This document shows positions 1 through 43,495 of a DNA stretch of 64,000 nt, piece by piece; position 1 is the first letter of the stretch, and each line of letters begins with the position of its first letter. Location: positions 1,627,987 to 1,691,986 of the forward strand of contig NW_003314279.1 in NCBI RefSeq assembly GCF_000143415.4, written 5' to 3'. Origin of the DNA: Selaginella moellendorffii (lineage: Eukaryota > Plantae > Lycopodiophyta). A program made the position numbers and the translations under genes. The notes under the pieces were generated by a model that searched no databases, had not been told where the DNA came from, and saw nothing but the letters and a program-made list of their open reading frames with translations.

Positions 1-1
1 G

Positions 2-610
2 CTACCTGGTCGCAGACTCGTCTGGGACAAGGCAACTGGGCTTGTGAAGCAGGCCGGGTCCCAACTTGCTCACACAACTGATGGTATTGTGTTTGATGGT
101 GCAACATACATTTTCATGGGCACCACGCCCTCTCTCTCTGGGCAGACTGATTTTGCTGTTCATGCTTGGGTGAAGGTCCCACCCCGCATGAAGCAGGAAC
201 TGTGCATCATCCAGCAACGCTCTGATCAAATCTATGGTGAGTGGTGGCTATGGATCCTCAATGGCAATCTATGGTTTACGGTGTACAATGGTGAATACCA
301 GTTCAGCATTAAGGGAACAGTGCCAGTCACTGATGGAACTTGGCACCATGTTGCTGCAGTCCGAAATGGCACTGTTGGGTCTATCTACGTTGATTCTAAA
401 CTTGATAAGTCACAGAACGGCTCCAAGATAGTCAACCTCAATTCCAACCTACCTGTCTTCATTGGCTATGACCCCCGTGACAACAAACGCTACTTTCATG
501 GTGAACTCTCAGATCTTCAGTGCTGCTGTTGTGCCTGTGGGCTTCAACCCAATGTCTATCTATGGAATCATGTAAGCTTATGCTCCTCTGACATCGATTC
601 ACATACGTAA
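2..610 (+). CDS. LamG-like (ConA-like lectin/glucanase, Laminin_G_3-type) jelly-roll domain protein; 5' end lies outside the window; possibly frameshifted near nt 27
   Basis: Intronless ORF with typical LamG motifs: GIVFDGATYI, FAVHAWVK, VTDGTWHHVAAVRNG, IYVDSKL, PVFIG...YFHGELSDLQ. The usual upstream DSSG motif (YLVADSSG) is in a different frame at nt 3-26. Confidence 0.7.
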   Translation, partial: LPGRRLVWDKATGLVKQAGSQLAHTTDGIVFDGATYIFMGTTPSLSGQTDFAVHAWVKVPPRMKQELCIIQQRSDQIYGEWWLWILNGNLWFTVYNGEYQFSIKGTVPVTDGTWHHVAAVRNGTVGSIYVDSKLDKSQNGSKIVNLNSNLPVFIGYDPRDNKRYFHGELSDLQCCCCACGLQPNVYLWNHVSLCSSDIDSHT

Positions 611-2276
611 ATAAAGAGGAGCTGGTTTGTTATATTCTATGAAGTATGGCGTGCTTCTTATGAATTGAATGTAGAATATTCATTTGTCTAGTGTCCATAG
701 TTCCACAATCCAACAAAGATGTATGGACAGAGTGGCAGCATTCAACATGCGTGGCAGTGCTTCGCCAGAATTCAGCAGCTGAGTGTTGTTTCAGGGAATG
801 GCATGCTCGTACCGCTTGCTTGGGAATTTGCAGCCTGGACAACAGTATATCGATCTACTCGCTGAATAGGTACTTTGAGGGGCGTTTTAGACTCCATATA
901 GAACAGTTTCAGAAGATGCATGTGAGAAATGTGTATCTTGGAATGCCATCATCTGACAGAGCGACATTTTCATGGCTAAGGTGGTCTTAAATTTTAATTC
1001 TTGTATTTGTTGTTTGAAAATAAATTTTTGTTATATCATGTCAATACTGAATTTAAACCTCTGGTCACTCTTGGACCTTATTACCCTTGGAGGGCCTCCG
1101 CGCTAACATTGTATCGATATAATTTTTCAAGTTTATGTACTAAGCAGCTTTATTTTATTCTAAAAATGAAAAATAAAATAAAAAACAGAGAAAAAAAACT
1201 TTATCATCTCTTGCTGGGTTGCTTGTTGTCGTTGTTGATCTGGAGGAGGTTCTGGTCCATGGATTTTGGTAGCAATGATATTGAGAGGTGACAGTGTTTG
1301 ATGCAAGAGATTCATAATGTTCTTACCAGACTTTGCCTATATTGTCGCCCCCACCAGTACTGCTCAAACAATTCTTGCTCAGTGTGCTGATACGCCAAGG
1401 ATCTGCAGAGGAGAAAACGGGTCAAAAGCAGTGATGAACTAGTCAAATCGTTTGTTCTCACGCACCTGTTGAAGCACCAATTTGATCTGATCTTCTTTGT
1501 AGACCAAAAAAATCCTGATAAAACCGGCACATCCCCTGATTTGTCTTGCACATTGATTTAAACTTGCATTTTCTAACAAGACAATGAGAATCCAACATAA
1601 GGAAGGTTGGAATGCTCCAGATTGCATGTTCTGGAACGGGTTGCAGATCAGAAGTGAGGACATTCCAGAAATTCATGATGGAACTGTCTCTGCTACCCTT
1701 GCCCTCGGCAGCGGCTTCATGGATGAGAAATACAGACACGTTCTACTGGAACTAGTTAGAAAATTTCAATCGCATGCCCTTTGCAGAAACGAAATAATCT
1801 TGAAAACTGTAAGAATTTCCTTAAAGCAAAATTTTATACTTGACCACATGGTAAAATCCTTTCCTTTTAATTTGTATTCTCCTAATCTATGGGCTCTAGA
1901 GCTATATTTCCAGTATGATAGAGTTTTTGCCAAATGGCCGTGCAGGATTGTGTTGAGATTTCTCGAGGTGGACCACATGCTCACACTCTCTCTCTCTCTC
2001 TCTCTCTCTTAAATGGGGAAATANNNNNNNNNNNNNNNNNNNNNNNNNNNNNNNNNNNNNNNNNNNNNNNNNNNNNNNNNNNNNNNNNNNNNNNNNNNNN
2101 NNNNNNNNNNNNNNNNNNNNNNNNNNNNNNNNNNNNNNNNNNGACCACTTTACTTTTGTATATAAACTAGGGTTTTTGGGTTACATTCTCTTTTCCTCAC
2201 AAACATAGTTTTTAAAATTTTATTTCCCCATTTATAATTATGTTTTACATTAATGTGTTATTGAAGTAAACTCCAT

Positions 2277-3182
2277 TTAGACATAGGAAGCCCAAATTGC
2301 TTTTACATGATCCATTCCATCAAAAGGCGTGTACTTGTAGATCACAAAGTTGCCATCGTCCTGAAGGGATGCTGCATAGCTTGCTGTAGCATCGTCAGCA
2401 ATTTCTGACTCCCATGCTGGATTCTCATTCTCTCGCTCGTACACAGCTAAGACACCATTCTTGTGAAGGACGGCATAACAGTTGCTGCCTTTGCCCTGAG
2501 AATCGCTTGCCCATCTAGCCACATTCTGGCCATCATAGAGGACAAGGTTGCAATCATTCTGCATGACCAGCGTGTAGCATGCATTTGCTGACCTGAGATA
2601 GTGATTGGTGTATATGTACGTCCCATCCTCGTACTTGTCCGTATAATCGACCTTGCTGAACAGCGTATTCAATTTGGGATCACAGTCCCCTTGCACATTA
2701 GGTCTGGCAAGTTCAGGTGCAAGCACTCCTGGCTGTGCAGCAGCACGGGCACCAGTACTGGTATCACCAGTTTCCTGACACCGAATCTGCAAGATGTGCT
2801 CGGTACCTACAATGCTAGCAAATCCACCTCTGATGGCTTGTTCCCCCAAGTGTAGCAGGAGCTCCACAGCATACTTATTCAGCCGCTTCCATGGTACCAA
2901 GTTTGACCACTGTGGGTCAGATGAACACGACTCTTGGTTCAACAACCAAGCCTCAACCCAGACACTTCTTCCCTCGACATTGATAATTTTATCTACAAGT
3001 ATTTGGCCAGCATAGTAAGCGTCCCGAGAAGGAACAATTCGTAAGAAATTCACGACTTCATTCATGAGCACACCGGCCCCTTGCTGAGTTAGTCTACCAG
3101 GTGACCCTGTAGGGTTTATCGACACCCCATGAGAAACAACCAAACACAGGCAAAGCATGGATGCCACAAGAAGGAGAGACAT
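2277..3182 (-). CDS. Secreted 301-aa protein with an unknown N-terminal domain and a C-terminal bulb-type (GNA-like) mannose-binding lectin domain
   Basis: ATG at 3182 begins a signal-peptide-like MSLLLVASMLCLCLVVSHG. The C-terminus has LVMQNDCNLVLY, WAS, LHKNGVLAVY and LQDDGNFVIY (QxDxNxVxY repeats). Single exon. Confidence 0.85.
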   Translation of the reverse strand: MSLLLVASMLCLCLVVSHGVSINPTGSPGRLTQQGAGVLMNEVVNFLRIVPSRDAYYAGQILVDKIINVEGRSVWVEAWLLNQESCSSDPQWSNLVPWKRLNKYAVELLLHLGEQAIRGGFASIVGTEHILQIRCQETGDTSTGARAAAQPGVLAPELARPNVQGDCDPKLNTLFSKVDYTDKYEDGTYIYTNHYLRSANACYTLVMQNDCNLVLYDGQNVARWASDSQGKGSNCYAVLHKNGVLAVYERENENPAWESEIADDATASYAASLQDDGNFVIYKYTPFDGMDHVKAIWASYV

Positions 3183-3259
3183 GGTTTCTCTATTATGGAA
3201 ATGCATGCTCACAGAATTTGCTGACAGACTTTCACAACACGAATGCATCATACACTTCC

Positions 3260-3267
3260 TATTTATA
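3260..3267 (-). promoter_or_regulatory. Candidate TATA box of the lectin gene
   Basis: TATAAATA on the minus strand about 80 nt upstream of the ATG at 3182. Confidence 0.5.
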
Positions 3268-5272
3268 TGGAAGAGGAGGTGGAGGACAAACATGGATGAC
3301 AATATTTTGCTTTGCTGCAATGCCGTGGCAAAAATGGTCGTCATAACATGGTTATTCATAGTACGCAAGTGCACGTGCCTTTGCCTTGTAGCTGTTCTTT
3401 ACCTTGTAGCTCTGAATTGAGGTGTCGAGGTGTTTACCTTGTCCATGAGCCCCACAGAGTCGACCAGAGGGACAAAGAACAGCCTGAACACCTCTGGCAG
3501 TGGAATTCCAACGAACACAAACATTACAAGACAAAAACATGTGTATTATATAGTAATATTATTATTTTATTATATTATTTCTTACTTTATGTTTCCTTTT
3601 CTTTTTTGCTTTTCTATCCGACAGTACCCTTGGCGATTTTGTGTCTATCATGGTCCGACTCCAGTTCAAATCAGGGGGATTTGTGAGAGATTCGTCTGGG
3701 AAAGCGCATGCTGCAACTTGTGCAAACGATCGGAACCACTAGTTGTGCCACTGGATGAGAGAGGAGCAAAGTAGGGTGAGGAAGTGGAGAGCGCTCTGAA
3801 AGGAAGTTGATGATCTGATCCACATTCAAATAGGTCGCAGCAATTACAAAGAATTTGTTTGGATTGTGACAATGGTTGATTCTGATCTTTGCACTGCCTT
3901 TCATGGGAGTTGTCTTCTGAATAGACAACTTCAATAGCTTGTGAGGTGCACTTGCAGTGTGTCAATTTTTATGAAAATCGCCAGGATTCTGCTAGGCTGG
4001 TGCACAAACAAGAGCTGTGAACCCCATTCCTTCATACAAGCAGTTGCAATCCATCCAATTCTTCACAGGCATTGATCTGGATGATCCAGAGATGGAGATG
4101 AGTCCCTCATTTAAAATATAAAATTGGAAATTTCAAAATAAATAATAAAATAATGTAATATTTTTATTCAGATTACTTGCTCTTGAAATTTCTTCAAGAT
4201 GGCTTATGCACAGACATCAGCTCACCAGCTTCAAATGGAAAGATTGGCTGAGTGTAAGTTAAAAGGCCCTAGGTTTACATATCATAGCTATGACCAGAAT
4301 GTTGATTAGGGACCACCACAATCACAAAGCCAGCCTAATAATTCATCACAAAAATCCAAACTTAAAACAGTTGAAAGGAAAAAAGCAAATATAAAAAGAA
4401 AAAAGAGAACAAAACAAAACAGACACAAAACAGCAAACCTTGTGGAACACAGCTTTACAGCAAGAAACAAGCAAAAGAAGAGCTCAAAGCACATGTTGTA
4501 TAGTACTAGAGAAAGTATGTGGTGAAGAGGGCTCTTTTGTGGTGGCACCACTTTATTTGTTTGCAGCATAGAACACAGCACTTGACCTATGGCTTTGAGA
4601 ACACTGTCAGCTCACATTCATAGACAAGCATTGTGGGGTATGTGGTCACACCCCACAATTGGCTTAGCTTCACTAGAATCAGCTGGCCCTTAAAATTGTT
4701 CATAGATATTTTCAGGAGAACATAACATCGTCTTGTTCTCAAGACCATTTTGCTCTCAAGCCATGGATACGCCTACAATGATTGAGGGCGAAGAACTACT
4801 GGCCACGAGCAAAGCATCCCATGGAAAGGCAGTTATTTTGAAGAATGATGAGCAAGTGGAGGAACTTTTTCCAGTGGAAACACTCAAGCATATAAGCTTG
4901 CTAAATTTCATGAGATCAAGTTGGTTGTTCTTTGTGAAGTTGGTAGCACCAGCTCATCACTAAGTTGTTTGGCTAAATTTTAAAACTTTAAAAGATTACA
5001 TCATTTCCAATTAATAGTATGGAAGAGATATTTCAAAGGAAGGCTTAAGAAGAAATGAGAAAACAAAATTTGGAGACATTAAATAATAGCATATCAGTCT
5101 GAAATCCAAAACTCATGCATAACACTGCTTTAAAAAGTATCAATGATAGAGGTCAATTTTTTTTGTTTTGTGTTATGTACTAAATTTTATAAAATTGCCC
5201 TTAAAATATTTTTAATATTATAACTTTGCACTTACTTGGCTCTTTAACACACTTGATTTAGAAATTTTTTAT

Positions 5273-5627
5273 TAGGGTAAATTATTTAATTTGAGTCAAT
5301 TATTAATTAGAAAAAATCATAATAAACTCAACAAATCAAATCTGTTGTCTATATGTACATGAATTATGAACAAATTTATTACATTGGCCACAAGTTGGCT
5401 CAAATTATTTAATTTAGCCTTACATTAATTAATTTAGAAAATATTATATATTAATATGTTAATTTTAATATTTTATTTAAGATTAAATTTATTAATTTGA
5501 GCCAATTTGTGGCCAATGTAATGAACTTGGCCATAATTCATGTACTTGTAGACAATCCATTTGATTATGTTGAATTTATCATGTTTTATTTAATTAATAA
5601 GTTAACTCAATTATTTCATTTACCCTA
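5273..5627. repeat. Long imperfect inverted repeat (foldback/MITE-like)
   Basis: The arm TAGGGTAAA...GTACATGAATTATG...TTACATTGGCCACAAGTTGGCTCAAATT is mirrored by AATTTGAGCCAATTTGTGGCCAATGTAA...CATAATTCATGTAC...TTTACCCTA. Arms are about 150 bp around a short AT-rich loop. No clear TSD. Confidence 0.8.
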
Positions 5628-8199
5628 AATTAAATAATTTTCCCTAATTATCAATTTAAAAAAATATTTGAAATATAATGGGATTCTGATCCACCTCTTC
5701 TTCTATATAACCTAGGGTTTTGAACTAATATAAATATACATATTATACATAGGAGATGAAAGGCAATATTAAGAGTAATTGAATTTATGTTTTTTTTTTA
5801 ATTTAACTTTTACATTATTTAGATTTATCTTGTTCTCGTAAATTTTTCCATTTCTTTTTTATTGCTCTCTTTCATCAAGAGGTTCATTCAATACCTATTT
5901 AATCATATGTTTACTTTCCAATTTTTTTATAATAAGAGGTCTATCCTTTTTTGTGTTTCCTGATATGAATTTAAATTTATCTTGTATTGCTCTGTCTGTT
6001 ACTATATATTATTATCTACATTTGCATCATATGGTAAAGTTAGTCTTCATTCTCTATAGCAACAGTTATATGTATATGTGTAGCATAAGACAAATTTAAT
6101 TGTGTGATCATGAATTTGAGTTTAAATTATTATTGATAGTGTTAAGTCAAAATTTTATTATATGATTGTTTGATTTGAATAATACTTTTGCAACTTTCCA
6201 GTGGATAATAGATAAGTTTCTCCACAATATACTAGAAATGACTACTAACATTATTGTTCATGCTTTAATCCATGTATGTTTATAATATCTAAAAGGTTTT
6301 AAATTAATTATGTCAAATTGATTTGAAACTAAAGTAGTCTAATTTCTTGTTTATATCCCAAGATTTATCTTGGGTATTGCATTTCTCACAAAAACATACA
6401 AGTTGATCCTGACAAATTTATAATTATTTTAAATTTTGATAGTAGAATCAATTATAGTTTCCCATTTATTTGTGTTGATAGTGTTTGATTTAATAAGGTT
6501 TTTTTGTGGTTGAATACTGCTAATCCAACTATTCAACCCATTAATAGAAGTTTTATTTGCAATTGTTGTTTGATATTTTTTGTCAAATGATGTTCCAAAG
6601 ACAATGGATCAAATAATGATTCCACACATATGGTTGAAGTATTTTATATTTTAATATCTCAATTAGGGATACACCCACGTTATTTATTAATAAATAATAT
6701 TTTTAATGGAATAATTCATTATGAGCTTCAAAGGGATGATTTCAAAGTATATAGAATTTTAATATACAAAATTGTGATGCTTATATATTATCTTTCTAGC
6801 TCACATATATTATAGGGGTGTAAGTTTTGTTGATGTTTCATTATAAAAACTCATATATAGTCATAATTTTATATTACTAATGTAGTTAGTTTATATTTAT
6901 GATAGTGGATAATGTTAGGTTTTGGGATTAGTATTTAACAAGCATTTTTCCATAGGTCCAAGTAAATTTTTTTAAACACTTAAACATATAAATTTATACT
7001 TCCCAATCTTATAGTGCTTAGTTTGTTTAAAAGGTTTTCTGCCCAATAGAAGGGATTATCAAGTATTATAGCAAGTTGAATTATGTTTATAAGATTTAAC
7101 ATGACATTTAGGAAATCAATCTTTTAGAAATTATATATATGTAACAATTAAACCACTTTACAAAAGGATCATGAATAACTTATACTATCTATGGATGCAC
7201 TAGTGCCTCCTCTTGATATTTTTTTAGCATTGACTATCATTCTAAAAGGAGTTATATTATTGTATATTATTAATAATGTAGTGAAACTTTAATAGATACT
7301 GGATTGAATTCAATTTAAACCACTTGCTATTCTAAAACAATTAGCTAAATAATTTAATTATGAATTTCCCACACGATTTCAAAACTAAAATTTCAAATCC
7401 CCAACTGTAGTGTGGCAATAGAGAGATTGCATTAGATCTCTTCTCTGCAATAAAGTGCTAAGGATTAGTTAAATAAATATTTAGAATAAACCAATATCTT
7501 ATGTTAAGGTGGGTTCCATACATCCTTCACTTGGAAATTTCTCCACCATGGAAAAAAAACTCCCCCCTTTTAAAATTTTGAGGTTACATGTAACTCTGTT
7601 TTACTAATATGAATGTATGATTAAAAAATCAAAACATGGCAAGGTGAAGTTTCCAATTCAATTTTATACCATAATTTTTCAAAAATATATTAATAAACTA
7701 GCAAAGAATCCAGCTCTTCTGGCCTATAAAAATAAATTTGTAATGATGTCTTACTAAGATAGAAACATTGTTAAAAATAATCTTGTAAATCTTTTTAAAG
7801 TACATAAATAACATATGAAATAAATTACATGTTGATTTTCATGATCTGCTCAAAATCTTCATTTGGTAAAATAAAAAATAATAATGAAGTTTTTATAAGT
7901 GAAATTTAATAATAAATCTATGTCCAAATAAACTAAATTGCTGACTTTTAAAATTAACTCAGAGATATTTATATCACTTTTTAGTAAAAATAAATCAATA
8001 TATACAAAATATTATATATACAGCTTAACAAACTCCCATGTATACTTTAAAAATTAAAGATGTGCATATTCATAAAAGTCTAGATAATTATATTAGTTTC
8101 TTATAAACATTATTATCTAGTTATTATAAACATTTAAAAGCTTGAATTTAATTAGTTTAACTTCACATAAAATATTTTGAAGTAATATATGTTTTCAAA

Positions 8200-11100
8200 C
8201 TCTTGAACTTTTAAATTTGAGTTGTTAGAGTCAATTTCCTAAGTGTCTCCGACACCTTGCATTGCACATATTGCATAACTCCACTTCCCATCTTTGGAAA
8301 TTCTCTATTTTAAGGGCACCATCATCTTCTTTCCCATTTTGTATGACTTTTGGCCCCAAGTTCTAGTTATCCTAAGGCTGTTCACATCCCTATCATTTGG
8401 CTACTTTACCGCTCCCTGCCTTTGGAGCTTCCACTTTCGCCAAATTGGAGCAATTGGGAATTTATTCATCGAAATACATATTGCCTTTCCCATAATTCGT
8501 TAGCACTCAACACATTAGTGTTCTTGGCCTAACTTTGCGTTTTGGATTCTTTCCCATGATTCCTATAGCTCTTTTCTTAGCCACTAGTCTTTTGCTCCTA
8601 TCCTTGATTGTTGCACCTAACAACATTGGATCGTTACCTCCATTTTTGAGATATCCTTTTGGTTCCATAGCAAAGACTTTGCTTTACTAAATTCAGAGGG
8701 TGTTTACCCCTAATATGTCTCTTTATCATTTTTTTTGCTATGGCTTTATTCATAACCTAATTTAGTGACCCTCCCATAGGTCTTTTATAGAGACTACTTT
8801 CTTCTAACTCACTATACCATCGCATGGATATAGCTTATTTCCCTTAGGTGTTTTTCCCATTTGGTTATCTTGACCAAGTGCTACCCTCATAAACAGTTCA
8901 AATCAACACTTTGAACCAGGAACTTCATTCCTTAGCCAACCAAAGACCTTGTCCTTATTTAGTCAGAAGATCACCTAGTGATCTCACCTTGGCACCTTAA
9001 TAGAGTTGCCAAGAGGTATTTGGTTTTCTAGACCTTCAAGTTGTTGACCATGACCCCGGGGGCATCCCCCACACTTGGCAGTGCACCCAAGCCAACCCTT
9101 ACGGCTAATGGTCCATAGCAACTAAGACTAGATGTCCCCATCTCATTCACCACGCCCTTGGTGCCACTCGCACCAAGGTGTTCAAGTTAGATATGCCGAG
9201 CCCAACTAAGCAATCTAACCGTGCATCATGACTTTAAGGCATCCCTCGTTTGGCGGTGTGCCCAAACCAGTCTCCTCACTAAGAGTCCATGACCACCGAA
9301 AAATGAGTGTCCTCATATTCCAAACCATCACCACGCTTTAGTGATTTGGGACTCGAACCCAAGCACTAGAGGGTCGAGACTCGAACCCAACCTCCGTATA
9401 TGCATCTACAGATGGCATTGCACAGTATGCCTGGTGTGACTCCTTACGTCGGTGCACCAACATGTACTTAAAGCGTGTTATAGATCACAGCTTAGGAACC
9501 TAGTTCCTCCGCACTACCAAGTCTTCTCACTTGACAAGTCTATGATCATGCATGGACTCCTCCATGCTTGGCCCAATGGGCCACCCCTTTTGAAGTTAGC
9601 ACCTTTAACTAGGGGATTTGTCCCCCTGACTTGCCAATCTCGCTTCGCAAGTCATCCGGCCACTGTAACATGGTTCATGCATAAGCGTGAAAATCTTTAA
9701 CCATCGACTTTCGTTCAAAGCCCTCTCTTTGAACACTCGGGAACTACTTCCCCAACCTTGATAGCCTCGCTTCATGACCAGCTTCAAGACCATGCTTCTG
9801 CTATGCCACTCTGATTTCGCGCGCTCTAGGAACCATTTACGCTTGGCTTTCTAAGTACTTACCTACCTAGAATTGTCTTTGGGAACCTTCAAGGAACTCT
9901 GTTTCTTAGCTTGCTAAGGCTTCTCCTTTGCAAGCTCCCTACTCACCATATGGTCTAATATGGACGATTCCACATTTTAAACTTTCTATGGCATTGCAGT
10001 TGCTAGTAACAACATCCTCGAGCACCCTCTTGATTCTCCACTCCCATCTTGTATAACCACCGTTGGTTATGCCCTTCGATTTCTATGGTTCAATTCCATC
10101 CCAATACTACTTGCCTTTTGGCCTCATATGTTTCCTTTGGTTATTCTTCTCCAAACTAGGAGGATAGCTTTGCACATTCTACTATGCCTTAGTAAGTATT
10201 CATAAGGATGAACTTACCCAATAACTTAGGGAGTGGTTCCTCAATCTAGGCATACTCACCTTATAATCCCACACACCGGGGTTACCGTTGTTACTTATGC
10301 GCCTCCATATACCCATCACTAGCCTTGCCAAAATCTCATTTCTGGCTTTGTCGAAATTGGGTAGACGGATTCCTCCCATCTCCACAACCTTGGACGTTTG
10401 GATGGCACATCTTATCCATCATTTGCTAAGGACTTAGTCCTTTAGGCTTTATCTAATGCCCTTGCGACATCAAACACCACTTCCTGGTGTTTTAAAGTGT
10501 TTGGGTGTCCCAATGATGGTCTTCTTTGGCAATGAGCATTCCCTTTATGACATTAACTTACTATATTGCAACATAAACAGCTTCTCCCCCATAAGGGTAT
10601 ATTTAACTTCCTTATCCCAATAAGAAGTCTTAGGTAGCTACCTTCTACTAGTTTAACTAATTATTTTGCACTTTTTGCTTAGTTGCCTCATAGTTGTCAA
10701 GTCCTACAACTCATTGCTTAGTGCTTCCACATCTCCATCATTATCTGGGTCACCACACTCTAATCGCATGCCTTCCAGCTTAAGCCATGCCATTCCCATT
10801 TCCATTATGATTCCTCTGGGAAGGGGTTCTTATAAACCCACCAACTTGACCTCAATGCAACATGCCTTGGCACATTCGGTGTCTCCACACCCTCGGCTCT
10901 ACAAGACTACCTTTATGACACTCCCCACTTGTGTCAGGGTCTTTGCCAAGACCAAAGTAGTCTTTTTTTATGCCAACTATCAGTTAGCACTGCACCATAG
11001 TGTTCACACACAACTCTATACCAAAATTGCTTTCTTTTTGGGGAACACCTTTCCCACAACTTTAGCATGGCACATTTTGCCATCGATGAGATACCCTTTT

Positions 11101-13451
11101 GTTCTCATACTTGGATCCTATGATCCCTCCTCATCCTTCGTGGGGTACAACACATCTCAGTCCAAATGCTTCCATTAATACTTTAAGATTATTTCTTGAT
11201 TCTATTTGAGTCATCTAGCTTTTTGGACTTTGTCATCCGACAACCCGTGAAGTCCTACCTTTGAGGTGCTAGCTCACTGGAATATAACTTCTTGTATTCA
11301 TGTCCTGCTCACAAGGACCATCTTTGCAAGTGTTATTCTGACACTTGATTTTTTCTCTTGGGGCAACCTTTTGCCCCTTAGGACCACTTGTCCATGTGAT
11401 GAGAATACCAACTCATCCTCTAAATACACCCCCAACTCCTTGGGTTGTTCCAGCATTTATTAAAGGTAGCCCTGGCTACCATTTCAAGGACTTGTGTCCT
11501 TTTCTATATTTGACCTCCCATAGTCATCAATTCAGGTCTAAAAGTTATGAGCACCAGCTTCAACTATATGAGGGTAATTTTGTGACTCCTTTATTATTTT
11601 GGAGTCTCTATCTTCCCCGTGATCCCAACTATAGTTGTTTACCACAACTACCTTAGCCAGTTTGCTAAGTCAAACACTCATCTGAATCACATCCTCAACT
11701 CTCTAAGGAAACCCTTATATTGTTCCTAAGATCCCAAAGTTGTTCTATTATTGGCCCTTTTCTATCAACCATCTCACCTACAAGTTCACACATGAACTAT
11801 AGTGGAGAGCCATGTCTTCCCGACCTGCTACTCCTCACAGATAAGCCCACTCCTAGGACCTTCTGATGCTAACACCAATGGTGATATACTTGAGCACCAA
11901 TAACAGTCGAACTAAGGAACAACTTCGATACTAAGTTGTAAGTGACTAAATTTTCCATTTTACTTTAGTCATTTAACCACACCTCCGACCACTTGGAGGA
12001 GTCTCACTCACAACCTCCATAGGTCTTATTTTGGGCTTAGGGACTTATTAGCCCCCAAGAATGGCATCCATGCCACTCAACCATTGCACTTGGTCCAAGT
12101 GCCCTATGTGTCCGATCCCATGATCGACACCCCAAGGTACCATCGACATATCAACCCGTTATGCTAAGGCCATGCCTATTCACCTTGGTCATATCAGTGG
12201 TCTGACACCACCTACATTACAGTCCTATCTCTCAAAGACTGAGTCATCCATCCATGAGTGATCATCCCAAATCCACTCCTTAGCATCCTTAGGATGCCCA
12301 CAGACATAGGGAATAGCCTTCCCCAACATCCCTTTTCCGGTCTCCACTAAGTCCCTTTCCGCCCATGGCCGTGTTTGCCAACATTGCCACTGGATTGAGG
12401 CCCACAGGCCCAACCACTAAGTCCCATGGTCCTTTAGGACTTCCTCACCACCTGATTGTATCCTTGGTCACTACACCAGAGGACTACTCCTCTTCCTTTC
12501 CACAGTCTGGGCCTTTGGGACAACATTTCAGAACACCGTGGCCCTACGCGGGCCTTAGGTACTCTCCCCACCTTCCGCTTTTGGGTGCTCTAGCCATGGG
12601 CTTAGAGTGAGGTTCCGTTAAGCCATGCTAGGTATCCAAGTAGGTAGTGCCACCCACACTTGGACTGGGAACATCGGCCAGTCGATCTCCCGGGGGAACT
12701 AGAGCCGGCTCTTGAACACTTCACCAAGCTACCCCGCTTGTCGGTCCGTGTTCACTCTAGTGTTGGACTTCCCAGTGGGCAGCTTATCACCCAACACTGG
12801 GTACAACCTTCCTGGGCCAAACTGGCCTTTCCTGGCCAAACTGGCTCTACTGCAGTCCTCCCCCTTACTATACTTTTGGAGCTCACCAAACCCCCCAGGG
12901 TCTGGGAGACGAACGCTTTGGGCTTTCACCCTCTTAGACTCGGACTTGGACTCGGACTCAGACTCAGACTCGGTCTCGGTCTCGGTCTCGGTCCCGGTCC
13001 CGGTCCTGGTCTCGGTCTTGGTCCCAGTCTCTGTCTCGGTCTCGGTCCCGGTCTCGGTCTCGGTCTCGACTTCGGACTCCGTCTCGGGTCCTTCTCGGAC
13101 TCCATCTTGGATTCCATCTCGGGTCCATCTCAGACTCCATCTCGGGTCCATTTCAGACTCCATCTTGGGTTTATCTCGAACTCCATCTCGGACTCCACCT
13201 CTAACTCCATCTCGGACACTTCCACGTGTCATGTTTTGGTCCTCTTGTGTCCCCTTTTCTAGAGACTCACTCATGGCTCGCCTCGTGCTTGTTCCTCGAG
13301 CACTTCATTGGGAGTTCCACTCCCACTCTCAACCTTTTCAAGTCAGAGTTTTTAGTCCAAATGTGTTACGCTCGTTTGGCTTTTGCTTTGGCCACTACCA
13401 CGTGGCACCCTTTTGGCTCCACTTTGGGGCCTAGAGATTTTGTGTCTCACA
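8200..13451 (-). mobile_element. Family A LTR element, copy A1 (non-coding, LARD-like): 5' LTR plus internal region, 3'-truncated
   Basis: LTR at 11937-13451 followed on the minus strand by a degenerate tRNA-Met PBS. The internal sequence matches 39130-40440 and, in reverse, 62874-64000. No gag/pol ORF recognised. Confidence 0.85.
11937..13451 (-). repeat. Family A LTR (A1 5' LTR) with internal GAGTCC/GAGACC/GAGATGGAGTCC tandem arrays
   Basis: Termini TGTGAGAC...CTTACA on the minus strand; aligns by eye with 37100-38815 and 61189-62873. Confidence 0.9.
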
Positions 13452-23411: not shown

Positions 23412-24609
<1,198 letters not shown>

Positions 24610-27600
24610 TTGCCGCTAAAACCCTAACCCAAGAACCCTAAAAGAAAAAGTTGAAATATATTTTTGACCAGCCATCGCTCCATTCTAGCCCTAAATTCAA
24701 ACCTGTTAATTATTTCTTTTTTTTTTCCTTTAAAAATTAAGTTATTTTGAATTTAAAAATTAAGTTAAAAATCAGTTTTAACAAGTCTATTGCTATTTAA
24801 ATTTTTGGTTTGCTTAAGTAAACGTTATAGCGGTCAAACCGGGACCCATTTTCATTCATGGACAGCAACAAAGCCTCAAAGAAAACACACCTTTCTAGTC
24901 GTAATGTCTGCCAAACACGCCACACGCTCAGACTCTGCTCCCCACCTCTGAGGTATCAATCTCCTTTCTCCCCAACCTCGCAAAACCCCTCCCTCAAGAT
25001 GTCCCACCACGTCAGCCTGTTCGCCATGTGAACTATTCGCCAAGAAGCGCGATACAACCAAAAAATAGAAAAAGTTAGGGTTAGGGTTCGACAGAGGATT
25101 CAGTTAAGGCTTTGCTAACTAGTCACCGATTCGAACGGCGTTTACTTGTGTGTCCTCAACTCCTAGACTAATGTCACATGCATAACATTGTGTAGTCATT
25201 TCCTCTTTTTCGAAGGAGAGACTTGAAAAAACATGGGTCTGATTGAGCGCTCTCTAGGACTTCTAACATTGCTGTCGAATATCAAATTAGAGAATCGTAA
25301 TTCTGTGGCTAACACTGTCCATGGCATTGCACTCTCTGTTTGCTGAGCCAAAATTGTCATCTTAGCTTGAGTTGGCTGATCTATTACCAAATAGGGCCCA
25401 TCGTACCGTGAAGAACACTTCCTTCCTAGGATGCCTTGCACCACAACTTTGGCCATGACAGAATCTCCAACACCAAAGGGATGATCATTGATTCTTTTTC
25501 TTGTAGTTCCTTGAATAACGAGCTTGTGCCTGTTCAATGTTTGCTCTTGCTCTTTCTTCCAAGATTGGCCTGTGATTCGAGCTTTCTCCAATGTAGTTCT
25601 GGGATTCAATACCATCATTGGTTGCGGTGAGATCTCGCTCAAAAGGTGAAAAACCTGTGGACTCGTGTCTTGTTGTTCTGTAAGCAAAGAGTACTTCCGG
25701 CAAAACATTGTCCCACTCCCCTTTCTTGAGCAAAATATTTACTGAGACCATCTTTTCTAGTGTCTTGTTTAAGCGCTCTACCATGCCATTAGTTGAAGGT
25801 TTGAATCGTCCTGTCAGGGTGTGCTTCACACCCATTCTGCAGCACAGTAGGGAGAATGCCTCACTGCAAAACTCTTTTCCCCTGTCAGTAAGGATCTCCT
25901 CTGGGACTCCATGTCTTAAGATAACATCCTCGTAGATAAACTCCACGGCAGTCTGAGTAGATTTGTCTTTTACTGCTCGTGCCTCAACCTACTTAGAGAA
26001 GTAGTCCATGCAAACAACAATATATTTGTTGCCATGTCTGGAGGGGAAGTTGAAAGGTCCAACAAAATCAAGTCCCACCCTTGCAAAGGCCCTCCAATTG
26101 GCAACGGCTGTAATTCTGAGGTTATAGATGACCGCATAGGAGCATTAGAGATCTTGCAAGCCGTACATGAGGCTATCACCCGATCAACATCATTCCTCAT
26201 ACCAATCCACCAGTAATGCTGCTGTAAATCATCTAGGATCCTGTTCCGTGATAAATGTCCCGATAAAGAGGAAGCATGGTATCTAGCACGAGCTCATCGA
26301 CCTCATCCCACTGAACTACCAACAGGTATTGATTCAGCTCTCTTGAAGCGATGTACATTAGCTTGCCATCTAGCACACCAAACTTATCTCTTCCTCGATT
26401 GAGTTTTCTCCTCACTGACTTGTCAATGCCAGGAACAATCTCTCCTGATTCAGCAAAGGCCAAGCGCAGTTTGTATTCTTCGCGATCCATCTGAAGTCCA
26501 AAGCAGGGATAACTACCTCAACCAACCCACACACTTAAATAATCAAGTCCAAATGGGGATGCTCACGCGGATGGAACTACAACCCAGAACAGGAATGATA
26601 AATATTGCCACGATAGCAAGGAAATTCAACAAGTTTGTGAGACAGTCTAGCTGTGAAAGGCTCTGGATAACCCATCTGCGTTCGAGTTTTGTGAGCCTCT
26701 TTTGTAAACAATTTCATAGTCATATCCCATTAAGTAAATCGACCATCGCTGGAGACGACCTGAGAGTGATCCTGAGCCTTGAAGAGCCTTGAGCGCTTGG
26801 TGATCAGTTTCGATTTTGACTCGGGTGCTATGGACATAAGCACGGAAGTGTTTGAGTCCCTGTACTACAGCAAGACATTCCTTTTCCGAAATGGAGTAAT
26901 TTTGCTCAGCTTTCTGCTATAATAAGCAATGGGATGTTCTGCATTGCCAATCTGTGCCAATATTGCTGATATGGCAAGTCTTGACGCATCGCACTGCAAA
27001 AGCTGCACAAGATGGATTAATACATTACCAGGCAACCACAATACCTGCAATCAGGATAAGATAATATAGGCTACTTGCACAGCTCCCGCTTTAGTTCTTC
27101 AAAGGCGTTCTGCTGCTTGGCACCCCAAGCCATCCGCTCCGACTACTTTAGAAGCTTTGTCAGTGGCAAGGCCCTTTCTGCGATTTGTTGATAAATCTTC
27201 GATAATAGCCAGCCAGACCAAGAAAGGCTTTAATCTGCATCGAGACATTAGAGTTCCAAACACACGAAGGAGAACTCGTGTACCTACTTCTTTCCCTCAG
27301 GAATAGGAAACTCCTTCACTGCTGATATTTTCTCAGGATCCGGAGCAATTCCTTTGCCAGATACCACATGTCCAAGAAACTTAATTTCGCGCATGAAGAA
27401 GTGACATTTTTTTGGCTTAATCTTCAGACCTGCTGCTTTCAATCTATAAAATACCTTTCTGAGGTCTGTGATGTGGCTACATACTCCCCGAGAATAGACA
27501 TTAACGTCGTCTATATAGACAAGTGACGATTCCCATCTGAGCGTACCGAGGACACGGTCAATAAGTCTTTGAAAAGTAGCACTCGTGTTACATAGCCCAA

Positions 27601-29259
27601 AAGGCATGCTTTTGAACTGGTACAAACCATCCTGGCATGTAAAAGCTGTCTTTTCCTTATCCTCTTCTCTCATAGGCACTTGCCAGAATCCAGAGGCTAG
27701 ATCAATTGAGGAAAACACCTGCGTTACAACACATAAGTACCAGCATACCTCTCTCTCAGACATCTACCTGTGCACCAGCAAGCTGGTCGAGTGTATCATC
27801 TATTTGTGGTAGTGGATAAACATCACGCTTAGAAATGGAGTTCAACTTGCGATAATCAATGCAGAATCTGGTTGTGCCATCCTTCTTCTTGACGAGAACC
27901 ACTGGCGATGCCCAGGGTGATGATGAAGGCTCAATTACGTCAGCATCTAACATTTTCTTAATCTCCTCGGAAACAATCTTCCGCTGTTTGGGAGTTTCAC
28001 GGTATGCATGCTGCTTGATAGGCTTGCTTGAGGAAGTATGGATCTCATGATGAAGCATATCAGTTTTGCCCAGGTCAAGAGTTCCAGTACTAAAAATCTC
28101 CTGATACTGCCACAGCAACTCATCAAATTCAGAAACGAGATCCGTACCTGAGAGCATATCTCCAACTTTTAGTTCTCCTTTTATCCTCCCAAGGAATTTT
28201 AGAGCCTCCTCATCTAGTGGCAGCTTTTCTGACGACATACAGCTCACTCCCCCAACATAATTTTTGAATGGTTCTGGCAATCCAAGAGCATCCAGACCAT
28301 AAGCAGCTGTATAGCACACAATGTCTGAGATATCTTCACATGCTGCCTCGGCTATAGGATCACCCGACTTGACGTTCACCGTGGAGGTTGTCAAGTTTGC
28401 CATAAGGATGTCAGGCTTGTCCTTATATGCAGAACTAATTATTCCATTAGCTACTGACATGCCTCTCTAGAGTGCCTGATATGAGGACCACAAGTGAACG
28501 TTCCCTTGCAGCAACAAATAAAGAATTGTGTTGGGACAAATGCCTACATGTACTGGGCATGAATACATGCAGCATGGAACAAAACAAATTAAATCACAAC
28601 CTGTGACATAGGAGGAATCGTAATGTCTGCGTCCGCTTTTAGTAGCACCACCTTTCGATCAACCAAAAATACTTTGTTTGCAATTGCCTCTGCAAAGAGC
28701 AACCACAGCTTGTGAGGCAACATCAATCTGGATGCCATGTTACCTTTGCATGGCTCCTTCCACAGATACATCCCTTGCTTGATTGGAGCAAATGTTTTAA
28801 ACTCGGAAGTGCAACAAAAGGCTTTGTGTGAAGATTCAGGTTTAAGCAGACCCCCCAACTTCACAGGTCTGTGACCATTGGAGAAAGTGAGTTGCCTCTC
28901 CCTTATTTCAATCTTTGCACCTATAGCATCCATCCAATCAAGTCCCAATAGTGCTGCATTTGCACACGTGACTATACATGTCATCCTCACTGCTGTGTTC
29001 CCAACCTTCAAATCAAGGTTGACTAGACCTCAAGGTGTATATAGCTCATCATTGATCATGTGTATAAGTATGTGATGACAAGGGCATACCACCTTGGAGG
29101 CCTCGGTTACCCACTTTTCTAGCACTATTGTCACTTCATAGCTTGTGTCCACCATGGCCACCACTCTCTCAGAGAAATCTGAGTTCAACCATAAAGATAA
29201 CAAATTGATCTTCTTTTGGTCCACCATATCATGACCATTACAAAATTTTATGACTGTAG

Positions 29260-29812
29260 TGTAAGCAATCAAAGAGAACAACTTAAGAGACAGTCCATAG
29301 GGTTCAAATATAGAGGGAAAGGGCCCATGAATAAAAGTGCATCCCCCTTTCTAATGGGTCTTAGGATAATTGGGTTAAGCGTTCTAGGGTTTGAATAGTA
29401 CTGGGTTGGGTGACCTCCTGGGAAGTCCAAATTCAAGAGCTTACATTTGGTATCAGAGAAGTCTCGAGTTTGATTCTGTTAGTTAGTTTAGGGGAATCAC
29501 ATTTGAGATTAACATTTGGCAAGTTTAGTTTGCTTCTGGCTGGGCTAGACCCGAGGGGTAGGGTATTAAGAGAGCAAGGCTCTCGGGAGAGATGCGGCTC
29601 TTAACTTACATTCACGAAGGCGTGAATTTGCAGAGAAGCATGATGGATTGTAAATAACCAAAGAGAACGGCTTGAGAGATGGTCTATAGGGTTTAAATAT
29701 AAAGGGAAAGAGCCCATGAATAAAAGTGCAACCCCTTTTCCAATTGGTTAATTAAATGTCCTTAGGTTTAAATAATACTGGGTCCCAAAAAGTCCAAATT
29801 CAAAAGCTTATA
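29260..29812 (+). mobile_element. Cassandra-type TRIM with 5S rRNA-like LTRs, complete
   Basis: LTR1 29260-29445 (TGTAAGC...GCTTACA), PBS TGGTATCAGAG at 29448, ~200-bp internal region, LTR2 29649-29812, and a 5-bp TSD TGTAG on both sides. LTR1 contains GGTTAAGCGTTCTAGGGTTTGAATAGTACTGGGTTGGGTGACCTCCTGGGAAGTCC, which resembles the 5S internal control region. Confidence 0.93.
29373..29428 (+). promoter_or_regulatory. 5S rDNA-like Pol III internal promoter (A box, IE, C box) within the Cassandra LTR
   Basis: Matches the plant 5S segment AGTTAAGCGTGC...AGTAGTACTAGGATGGGTGACCTCCTGGGAAGTCC, as recalled. The C box is partly deleted in LTR2. Confidence 0.85.
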
Positions 29813-32104
29813 TGTAGAAAGAAGGGTAAGGTATCCATTATTTGCGTCTGACCCTTGCACAAGCGCAAACTCTAGTTTAAATTCTCTTCCGAAGACTTTG
29901 CTTTAAGGGCCTCAACTTACCAGTTCAGGTCATTGTATCACTTCTCTAGGTCAGCAATGTAGGTACAATCATGTTGAATGTGGCCCTCTTTCCCAGAAGT
30001 GTAACAACCAATCCTTTTGCTAGGTCCCTTGTCCCTTTCCCCATCAGTAGGTGCCAACTGCTTGACACCACTACCTACCATGGAACCATTGGTATATCTG
30101 TTTTTTTGAGACCAGCTACCTCTCGAGAAAGTCTCACCTCTTTTGGCATCATAGTGGTAGTCCTCTGGCTCTCCTGAGTCATCACTCTCTTGTATCTATG
30201 GCTGAGCAACACGTGTTGTAATTGCTTTGGGTTTCCACTTTTTTAATGCTTTTGCTGCCGCAGAAAGCAATTTGTCCATAGATCTCGTTTTTGCAGTGAT
30301 CAGATAAGGCTGCAAATCCTCACGAAAGCCTCAATAAAAAGCTTGCTTCGCCATCCTTTCTACCTTTTCAATGTCATTAGAGATATATGTGGCAGCCCGT
30401 TATAGAACAGCCCAATATTGCTGCACAATTTTGCCCTTTTGATAATTTCTTGTATTGATAAGTTCAAAGGCTCTATCCTCTAGATCCCCAATGATGAAGA
30501 GCCTCCTGGCCAAAGCTATGGCCTCATTCCATAATGTATGATAAACATTCTTTGTGCCTCTCTTGAGAAAGCTATAGAGTGAATGCCTTGCATAGTGAGG
30601 GTATGTGTGGAAAAAGATAAAAATTGTGGCCCAAGAAATGATGGAATGGATGGAATGGAGGCCATATTATGGTGGATGATACAGAAGAGGACTATGTGTG
30701 ATCTGATGTTGCAATTGGAAGTAGTAGCTAATATTGGGATTTGATGTAGTGTAAGATGAAATGGCCAAATGCAGCTGGAAGCATGTGGAGTGAGAAAATT
30801 TGTTTGCTCCACTGATGAGTGGCTGGATGCTTGTTCTATGTAGGCCCAATTGACTGAAGAAAAGAGCTAGAATGTCTCTAGATTTACTGCAAGTCTCATA
30901 CTGTGATGGTTTAAATTGTATCTTTTGTCTCCAACGTCCAAAAAATTTGATTTTTGTTGCATTATATTGTTGAAAGTCTTCTCAATAGAGTGATGTTGGA
31001 AGATCCTAAGTACCATGTATATATGGTGTGGAAATAATGAAAAACAGAGAGTCGGTATTTGTGATGATGGAATGCAATAATTATAAAAGTGAATAGAGTA
31101 ATGATTTGTGAATATAAATGAATGGGAATGAAGAGGAGAATGTGTTCCCAAAAGTGATAGAGACAAGAACCTGGGAACCAAGAGGAAAGGCCGGAAGATG
31201 AACAAGCTCCTAGACAAGTGGAGTTAAGGCCACCTTGAGGCTAGAATCTAAGCTTGAGCTTGTGTTGGCAAGAGGATATGGCATAGAAGGACATGAGAAA
31301 CAAGTGAAAACAAAGAAGAAAAAAAAAGAAAGTTAAAAGCCCAAAGAGAGGAGAAAATTCACTGCTAGTGAAGAAGGTAAGTCAAGCTTTTCTTAAGTGT
31401 TGTTGTGAAGGAGCTCCCCTTTGGAGGGCAAAAGAAATCCTAGAGAAGGCCTTGGATTCCATAGAAAGTTAAGCTGAAGTTAGGCATGATGATCTAAAGC
31501 TTGTGGTGTCGAGAGAATTCGAGACCACAAGAGATATTGATATAAGACTTGGAGTATGGTGTCTAGTTGTGCTGGCTGCTCCTGGATGGAGAATGTTGAT
31601 GCTGTTGAAGAGGAGAAACTCACATTGAGTGTTTGTAGAAGTCTAGTGGGCAAAAAAAGTGTTGATGCTTGGGAAAACTACCACAAAATCGAATGAATTT
31701 TGTGGCTATAGTCGGGTTGGACCATTAGAATGAAAGAAATATAAAGAAGTATGAGATAAGAGGGAGAAGCTTTAAAATCACACTTGGTATTATTGCATTG
31801 CAACTAATTTATACCAAGGATGAAGTCAAAAGCTTGACTTAGCACCAATTTGAATTTCAAGCTTGAGATCTCCCACACCCACAGTTAAGTCAGCCTCATG
31901 CTATGTATATGCATGTGTATAGCTGTTGCCATAAAAATAAAAATTGGCTCTATAGCAAAATTGAACTATAGTTGACAATGTGTGGCAATAGGTTGAGCAA
32001 TAGAAGATAAACTTAAGCCTATATTAATCAATATGAAGAGAATAATAAAAAACCTTTTGTTATAAAAATGAGTTCGGAAAGTAAACATTGGATGAATTAG
32101 TGCT

Positions 32105-33061: not shown

Positions 33062-33567
33062 TGTAAGTAACTAAAGAGAACGACTTGAGATACCATCAAA
33101 TATACAAGGAAAGGGCCTATAAAAAAGAGTACACCTGTTTTTCCCATCGGTTAAGGGTTTTGGGATACTTAAGGTTAAACATCCTTGCATTTGAGTAGTA
33201 TTAGGTTGGGTGACTTCTCGAAAAGTCCAAATTCAAAATTTTATATTTAGTATCAGAGAGGTCTTGAGTCCAACTTTATTGGTTGGCTAAGGGAATTATA
33301 CCACATGTTGAGATTGATATCTGGCAGGTTCAATTTGCCTTCGGCTGGGGTCGACCCGAGGGGTAGGGTGTTAAAAGAGCAGGGTTCTCAAGAGACCTAT
33401 AGCTTTATCTTCTGTTCACGAGAGAATGAACTTGTAGGAAAGCGTAATGGATTATAAGCAACCAAAAAGAATGATTAAAGAGACAATCCATAATGATTTA
33501 AATATAGAGGGAAAAGGCCTATAAAAAAGAGTGCACCCCTTTTTCAAGGTTTTGAGATCAAGGGGTT
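33062..33567 (+). mobile_element. Second, older Cassandra-type TRIM with LTR2 truncated
   Basis: LTR1 33062-33245 has AGTAGTATTAGGTTGGGTGACTTCTCGAAAAGTCC, followed by a degenerate PBS TAGTATCAGAG. The internal region is collinear with 29446-29648, and LTR2 starts at 33453. Confidence 0.85.
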
Positions 33568-41944: not shown

Positions 41945-43495
41945 TTAATTGAACTTTGCATAAGTACATAGAGTTCTGCCTTGCAGAAATTCCTCCACTA
42001 GATCTCGCGTGTTCGCTAGGTTCTCCTCCGGTTCCCATATCGCTTCGTAGTGTGGAAATCCTTTCCACTTCACATAGAACTCTCTCACCTCGTGTCCTTG
42101 TCGCTTGCTCTTGCGCGCATTGAGGATGGCCTTGACTTCGTATTCCTCTTCCCCTTGGATAACCTCAGGTAAAGGCCTTACTTGGTCTTTGCGAAGTGGA
42201 TCCTCAAAGTACGGCTTGAGTAAGTTCACGTGGAACACGGGGTGCATCTTCCCCATCTCTCAAGGAAGTCGGAGACGGTAAGCCACTTTACCGATTCGTG
42301 CCTCAATCTCATAAGGCCCTGCGAACCTGCTTAAGGAACTCAAGATCAATTCATTTATGAAATACATGCATTTTTACCTTTGGGTCAACTTCCGGCTGAT
42401 CCCACTTGGTAGCCTGAGGTTCTTGGTGTTCAACCACACCTTCTCCCCAGCTTGGAACTCTACGTCCCGGCACTTCTGGTTTGTGTACTTGGTTTGCCTT
42501 TGTTGAGCCCGTTCCAAGGAATCCCTCACTAGATTCCAAATGTTAAGTCTTTCCGCTGTGAATGCCTCCACTGCGGATAACTCTCCATGATACTCGGCCA
42601 CGCCGAGTTCCACAGGACCTTCAATAGCTCGCCCATTGATGACTTCCCATGGACTCACCCTGATGCTCGAATGTGGTGAGTTGTTATAACACATTTCCGC
42701 AAGTCCCAAATGACTTACCCAATCGGTCTGGTCTCCTGAGACATAGCATCGCAAATAATCCTCCAGCTGCCTATTCACCCTTTCCGTTTGTCTGTCTATC
42801 AAGAAGTGTTAGTGCCATCAACTTGACTTAATACCCCATACCTGTCTGTGGGTGATAGGCTTTGCTGAATTTCAACTTGGTGCAATACTATTCTAGGAGG
42901 GTTCTCCAGAACCTACTGGTGAAGATTTTATTTTGATCTGAGATAATCTCTTCTGGCCTTCCCCGCACTCGAACCACTTGTTCGAAGAACAGCTTCGCCA
43001 CACCTTCCGCATCCACTTCCGTTGTGGTGGGTATGAAATGTGCCATCTTCGAAAATCGATCCACCACCACGAATATCGCATCGAACCCCTCGCTTGGAAG
43101 GAGTCCCATGATGAAGTCCATCGTAAGACATTTCCACGGACGATCTGGAATTGGGATGCTTTGTAATAAGCCCCCACTAGCCTTAGTCATGGCTTTGACC
43201 TGCTGACATGTTGGACATGTCCTTACATAGTCTTGGACGTCCTTAACCATATCTAGCCAGTGGTACTTCCTCTTGAGTAAGCCCATTGTCTTGGGCACTC
43301 CGCCATGTCCCGCAAAAGGTCCGTCATGACACTCTTCTAAGGCTACCTTCCTTAGTTCCCCTTCCAGAACATACACCCTCGTTTGCTTATAATATATGAG
43401 TCTGTTGCGTTCCGCATAGCCCGTTTTCTCTTCTGTTAGCAACTCACCTCTCTGGTGAGCTTCCCGTGCCTCTAGATTCCTCAGAAACACTTCTT
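41945..43495 (-). pseudogene. Element B integrase plus chromodomain, containing two introns (42796-42841 and 42327-42377)
   Basis: HHCC (ECHD...GH...CPTC), MDF, VVVDRFSK, ISDQ, HPQT|D.QTERVN, KLTQR|FAGPY and a group I-type chromodomain. Contains in-frame stops. Confidence 0.9.

Follow-up and report, generated by a model that had tools for sequence, protein, structure and literature searches.

Exact intron-like inserts in the pol region of a dead Ty3/gypsy retroelement copy from Selaginella moellendorffii

The stretch of DNA analysed here, referred to as the window, comprises 64,000 nucleotides (nt) of Selaginella moellendorffii scaffold GL377583.1 (assembly v1.0, bases 1627987-1691986). Over the part compared, 18090-39155 of the window, the scaffold record agrees with it at 100% identity. 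On its minus strand, at approximately 30666-25199, it contains a decayed copy of a Ty3/gypsy retroelement without long terminal repeats (LTRs), whose pol region is interrupted by short inserts resembling spliceosomal introns (I1 to I5, numbered in the direction of the element). Judged by alignment to homologs, I2, I3 and I4 are certainly exact intron-like insertions; I1 is plausibly an intron, and the status of I5 is unclear. We propose that this is a dead, non-chromoviral copy with a dUTPase-derived domain and a pol interrupted by mini-introns of the host's spliceosomal type, belonging to a family that splices them out for expression and copies itself through unspliced RNA. We assign this explanation a probability of about 0.55; of its parts, we infer the splicing, the role of unspliced RNA as template and the presence of the inserts throughout the family rather than at this locus only.

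Exons were translated separately and aligned one by one to intronless relatives from a phmmer search (P0087, P0078, P0067, P0085 and P0018). All five inserts, which are 42-57 nt long, start with GT, end with AG and follow an AG in the preceding exon; the minus-strand coordinates and GT-AG ends given for them in a preliminary description of this stretch are correct throughout (Table 1). Compared with four or five intronless homologs, I2, I3 and I4 are exact insertions, with no residue gained or lost at the joints, and each of them would bring in an in-frame stop if retained; in I2 this is a TAA three codons in. I3 is located five codons ahead of the first catalytic aspartate motif of the reverse transcriptase (RT; …IDLASGFWQ), and its joint connects residues that are consecutive in P0087 (565 and 566), P0067 (438 and 439) and P0085 (759 and 760). 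The high-scoring segment pairs of tblastn searches abut at 27768 on one side and, depending on the homolog, at 27724-27715 on the other (27724 for P0087). I4 is located three codons ahead of FLGLAGYYRRFI. Its joint had been read as KKx/IKAF, and x is the TAG stop at 27286-27284, which fills the single homolog position between residues 582 and 584 of P0067 and between 903 and 905 of P0085.

The resemblance of the inserts to introns goes far beyond chance. When random inserts matched in composition and size were simulated, 0.8% of trials gave one that was exactly removable as GT..AG, and 0.15% did so when an AG was also required before it. T makes up 35% of the four inserts as against 27% of the exons. 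Moreover, their sizes of 49-57 nt fit the host, whose introns are reported to be short, with a fungus-like length distribution sharply unlike that of other land plants (PMC6157073). The inserts showed no likeness to one another or to anything else in the window, and are thus neither local duplications nor members of one inserted repeat family; for the same reason, we rejected an introner-like or locally templated origin.

The linker that holds I1 is poorly conserved and varies in length among the relatives; the insert itself is open in frame, without a stop. The spacing of the flanking segments is 15 residues without the insert and 33 with it, compared to 21 in P0078. As this linker is too variable for a frame test, I1 is marked as an intron only by its splice signals and by the annotators' gene model of the Joint Genome Institute (JGI), EFJ27085.1, which uses both I1 sites as well as the I2 donor.

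I5 behaves differently. Cutting out its 42 nt does not join the frames and leaves four residues of P0067 and P0085 without a counterpart, in agreement with the preliminary description, which had found this frame not cleanly restored. A contig of 448 nt from the sequencing run X16, which is only guessed to be RNA, is 95-99% alike and spans I5, where it has 10 other letters instead of the 42. Together with the two leftover bases of the upstream exon, these 10 letters make four codons, the size of the hole relative to the homologs. The DNA run X1 retains the 42 nt, and the X16-like form is absent there. I5 is thus one of two things: an intron beside an exon that lost 10 nt in this copy, or the scar of a 42-for-10 replacement that happens to have GT..AG ends. 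Consequently, the "four to five introns" of the preliminary description become three exact ones and a plausible one, with the fifth not clean in this copy. The alignment to intronless gypsy pol that it had recommended bears out I2, I3 and I4, offers no frame test for I1 and goes against I5.

Table 1. Features of the Ty3/gypsy copy, in element order; positions are those of the window.
Feature	Position	Strand	Basis
gag remnant: capsid C-terminal part and decayed CCHC zinc knuckle (29941-30195)	29941-30666	-	frame translations
unrelated repeat of ~560 nt between gag and protease, foreign to the element	29250-29813		repeat families, self-BLAST
protease; DTS in place of DTG/DSG; TGA at 29032-29030	28744-29215	-	translations; weak local alignment to P0087 and P0018 protease
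I1 (candidate): AAG/GTAACA...TTTGCAG/AG, 54 nt, phase 1	28690-28743	-	splice signals, JGI model EFJ27085.1
exon: N-terminal strand of dUTPase-like domain, ends ...IPPMSQ	28601-28689	-	aligns to P0087 290-305 and P0078 98-116
I2: CAG/GTTGTG...CATGTAG/GC, 57 nt, phase 0	28544-28600	-	P0078 116 to 117 contiguous across joint
exon: remainder of dUTPase-like domain and RT fingers; frame break near 28494; TAG 28469-28467	27768-28543	-	translations, alignments
I3: CAG/GTAGAT...AACGCAG/GT, 49 nt, phase 0	27719-27767	-	four homologs contiguous across joint
exon: RT palm (YIDD) and start of thumb; terminal TAG 27286-27284	27284-27718	-	Pfam RVT_1, 5.8e-30
I4: TAG/GTACAC...GATGCAG/AT, 49 nt, phase 0	27235-27283	-	P0067 582-x-584, P0085 903-x-905
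exon: RT thumb/connection; frame break near 27182-27185; TAGs 27145-27143 and 27073-27071	27045-27234	-	translations, alignments
I5 (?): CAG/GTATTG...TGTGCAG, 42 nt, phase 2	27003-27044	-	GT..AG ends after exonic AG; frame not restored
RNase H; frame break near 26905-26917; TAG 26649-26647	26650-27002	-	Pfam RT_RNaseH, 2.1e-20
integrase: H2C2 finger, DDE core, C-terminal GPY part; frame breaks; TAG 25991-25989	25199-26293	-	Pfam Integrase_H2C2, 5.6e-15; rve, 1.1e-7

Frame translations and Pfam matches give the domain order of the element as gag remnant, protease, dUTPase-like domain, RT, RNase H and integrase, with the Pfam families following each other in pol order on the minus strand. In tblastn searches it is collinear with full-length gypsy pol proteins, and the succession of protease, RT, RNase H and integrase identifies it as Ty3/gypsy. 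Downstream of RNase H, the integrase contains no intron-sized insert: residues 879-1089 of P0067 cover 26278-25641 with zero extra length in tblastn. The linker between RNase H and integrase (26662-26278) is 9-26 codons longer than in three homologs. It includes a 50-nt GT..AG stretch (26546-26595, minus strand), which may be a further intron, though no homolog alignment backs it. A chromodomain was not found, and the C-terminal integrase piece (25199-25738) has no Pfam family at E<0.01. At the other end of the element, the zinc knuckle of the gag remnant has a serine in place of its second cysteine and is accompanied by a capsid-like tail reaching to 30666; neither the gag remnant (at E<0.01) nor the protease has a Pfam match.

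Between protease and RT, the exons around I2 align to the dUTPase part of the relatives P0078 and P0087. Over the part aligned to these exons, the Pfam dUTPase family (PF00692) scores 46.4 bits in P0078 and 24.3 bits in P0087, against a cut-off of 22 bits, while the window's own pieces have no dUTPase match in Pfam. Judged from these alignments, the segment between protease and RT in this gypsy lineage is a dUTPase-derived domain. The dUTPase-bearing relatives originate from a metagenome and from an ENA assembly. The position of the motif-3 aspartate is altered in the window copy (domain at 28601-28350, minus strand).

The copy is dead and truncated. Seven in-frame stops were checked (29032, 28469, 27286, 27145, 27073, 26649 and 25991), and six of these are TAG, consistent with the decay of a silenced element by transitions. 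Further, the frame is broken near 28494, 27182-27185, 26905-26917, 26290, 26100 and 25730.

LTR retrotransposons copy themselves via RNA, and introns in their genes should hence vanish unless the template is unspliced RNA. In working members of the family, the unspliced primary transcript would be the template for reverse transcription, which is the only way for new copies to keep the introns. Translation of this transcript would yield Gag and protease only, because I2 presents the first in-frame stop after three codons. Only RNA that the host spliceosome had freed of I2, I3 and I4, and of I5 if it is real, would yield the dUTPase-like domain, RT, RNase H and integrase. Splicing would in this way set the ratio of Gag to Pol, replacing frameshift or readthrough, by the same logic as the single intron of Ogre elements, discussed below. 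More broadly, a gypsy family of Selaginella might replicate while keeping three to five mini-introns in the catalytic domains of its pol, with Pol coming from fully spliced RNA only and new copies from unspliced RNA only; separate gypsy lineages would then have gained introns independently, the short-intron splicing of the host allowing retroelements to acquire and keep them. We hold this broader proposal tentatively, at somewhat less than even odds.

By alignment, the inserts are absent from the nearest relatives found. P0087 is a single uninterrupted open reading frame (ORF) of 673 residues on a metagenome contig and is continuous across the places of I1 to I3. The contig itself (L002) stays in frame where I4 and I5 would lie, its spacing around the FLG motif being identical, and another relative (L003) is uninterrupted at the place of I3. 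P0067 is an intact pol of 1282 residues that lies next to a seven-transmembrane receptor gene and therefore comes from an animal genome. A phmmer search with an exon translation of 233 residues from the region 27768-28543 against 1.84 billion representatives gave 64,883 matches, of which the best full-length ones had 36-59% identity. Word-based protein searches found nothing above 60% for the RT exon and nothing above 49% for the integrase core, and in metagenomes scanned with the RT exon no relative exceeded 59%. The JGI model EFJ27085.1 (SELMODRAFT_412707), which maps to the element locus, forms a cluster with one member.

The window contains a second gypsy element (element B; 57331-58722 and 42083-43370), a chromovirus split by a DNA transposon of 13.7 kb. 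Its RT-RNase H part (58722-57331) aligns uninterrupted and in one frame over 428-471 residues, without inserts of the I1-I5 type. The absence of a chromodomain and the dUTPase-derived domain between protease and RT thus uphold the earlier assignment of our element to a different Ty3/gypsy lineage. As had also been noted, the insert positions differ from those of the introns noted in the element B integrase; this comparison of positions is consistent with separate gains. The integrase of element B has a frame change near 42808-42843.

Reads from two RNA-seq runs of the species (~1.4 billion letters each), from X16 and from the DNA run X1 were mapped to 25150-29200. The X1 reads cover the whole stretch, and no contig skips an insert. 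Over several parts of the element, including the bins with I1, I2 and I4, their depths add up to 2-4 times the single-locus value. The X1 contigs differ from the window at the break places 29032, 28469, 28494, 27182 and 27145, and at 28494 they show three forms, so that some less decayed sister sequence exists. Separately from these variants, X1, a DNA run of 2024 whose label gives the same species, shows full-depth differences from the assembly within the element (e.g. at 26674, 26941 and 27145), namely indels of 17 and 6 nt and several substitutions, and therefore comes from a clearly different genotype.

Several observations weigh against the presence of these introns in a replicating family. 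The absence of LTRs, reported previously, holds in our repeat search and self-BLAST, in which no direct repeat flanks 25199-30666 and which also revealed no target-site duplication (TSD), primer-binding site or polypurine tract for the copy. The two RNA-seq runs placed 0 and 1 read on the 4 kb, too few for a test of splicing. Over I3, X1 has the depth of a single locus, and the extra depth elsewhere may partly be a second haplotype. In the phmmer search, high identity was confined to the locus's own model, and the protein searches as a whole brought up no other member of the family among gene models and predicted proteins. To these must be added the failure of I5 to join the frames. Several of the same points suit the idea that the introns arose at this locus alone, after the element had inserted, in a pol-derived gene once used by the host or in a transcribed relic, that they never passed through retrotransposition, and that the locus decayed later: the missing LTRs and TSD, the lack of a second copy in protein searches and the single-locus depth over I3 would all be expected, and the locus has host-gene models beside it, two of which take in part of it. 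This is close to the once-domesticated pol gene that the preliminary description had raised as an alternative. Domesticated gypsy genes, however, usually retain only part of an element, whereas here a gag remnant that includes a zinc knuckle is present upstream and the integrase downstream is complete, and several bins of the element have 2-4 times the DNA depth of a single locus. We therefore regard a domesticated origin as less likely than it had seemed, and single-locus gain in general as unlikely.

Another way to account for extra copies without RNA is that the inserts are real introns of the family, but that the copies multiplied as DNA, by segmental or haplotype duplication, in an assembly that contains two haplotypes; a relative copied through RNA would then lose them. 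Duplication of this kind is present close by: 88.6 kb downstream, the same scaffold repeats 1-12670 of the window collinearly and at 96-99.8% identity (L004, GL377583.1:1709221-1729956), either because the other haplotype was assembled in tandem or because the segment was duplicated recently. Variant contigs with about half the depth likewise resemble a second haplotype. The three forms at 28494 in the DNA run, in contrast, exceed what two haplotypes can supply, and local depth is as high as about four times the single-locus value; we judge multiplication as DNA to be improbable, to the same degree as gain at a single locus. That the inserts are chance indels of a decaying pseudogene which mimic introns appears very improbable. 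The copy does have other indels and frame breaks, and I5 acts like a replacement scar, but three inserts are codon-exact, and four are of the form AG/GT...AG, all of them 49-57 nt in length, each with a chance probability of about 0.008, or 0.0015 with the exonic AG. The proposal of a family that splices its pol and copies through unspliced RNA is the one we favour.

The closest published parallel is the single intron of Ogre, a group of Tat-lineage Ty3/gypsy elements in legumes. According to PMC6317226 and PMC4408406 (citing Neumann 2003 and Steinbauerova 2008), this intron lies between a gag-protease ORF and an RT-RNase H-integrase ORF and is spliced from part of the transcripts. The two would have several features in common: both are plant Ty3/gypsy elements with an intron downstream of the protease that is kept in genomic copies and whose removal is needed for RT through integrase, the unspliced form giving Gag and protease only. 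By the same accounts, the one intron of Ogre sits in a non-coding spacer of a few hundred nt, whereas our element would have three to five mini-introns of 42-57 nt. Here, the inserts are inside catalytic domains: the dUTPase-like domain, the joint of RT fingers and palm, the RT thumb and perhaps RNase H. In BARE and in Ty1/copia elements of Arabidopsis, a subgenomic RNA is spliced to make Gag (PMC3735527, PMC5580714). There, too, host splicing divides transcripts between translation and replication, but it removes pol and raises Gag, while in our element Pol would need splicing to be made at all.

Other systems share single aspects. Basidiomycete Ty3/gypsy elements such as PosPlaTy3-5 have a dUTPase between protease and RT (PMC2864245); they are fungal and no introns are reported in them, and unlike theirs the domain of the window copy has no Pfam match of its own and a changed motif 3. 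Selgy is a non-chromovirus clade specific to S. moellendorffii, in the description of which introns or a dUTPase domain are not mentioned (Neumann et al. 2019; PMC6317226). Compared by description only, it resembles our element in its host, its placement among non-chromovirus gypsy elements and its compact coding region. Penelope-like elements are retroelements known to retain spliceosomal introns in their copies (PMC4209133), as would be the case here; they form another class, distinguished by the lack of LTRs, the GIY-YIG endonuclease, the telomerase-like RT and the replication mechanism. Our literature search found no paper on multiple introns inside the pol of an LTR element, in Selaginella or elsewhere. 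To the known intron-bearing LTR retrotransposons this copy adds anatomy; it is no proof of splicing or of inheritance through RNA.

If the proposal is true, splicing can replace frameshifting as the gate to Pol, and a retroelement can, in much the way of retroviruses, keep its spliced and unspliced RNA apart. The inserts would also represent intron gains that are dated and lineage-specific, in a genome whose intron sizes are fungus-like, and so be useful for studying the origin of introns. For annotation, it would mean that retroelement finders based on ORFs will miss or split such elements in lycophytes.

The surroundings of the element offer some additional observations. The repeat at 29250-29813, which separates gag and protease, has a relative that is 71-72% alike 3.8 kb away, at 33062-33547; the lengths are ~490-560 nt, with an internal period of 389 nt, and the two may be solo LTRs or short non-autonomous elements. 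Within ~600 nt of its 3' end, the element adjoins an N-terminal fragment of ELP3, the radical-SAM subunit of elongator (24168-24609, minus strand), which has a frame break and looks like a pseudogene fragment. The annotators' 'ELP3_N' model of 385 residues begins at 25835, inside the integrase of the retroelement. Lastly, a lectin-like ORF at the start of the window has a 98% identical twin in the downstream duplicate and is annotated only there (SELMODRAFT_412709).

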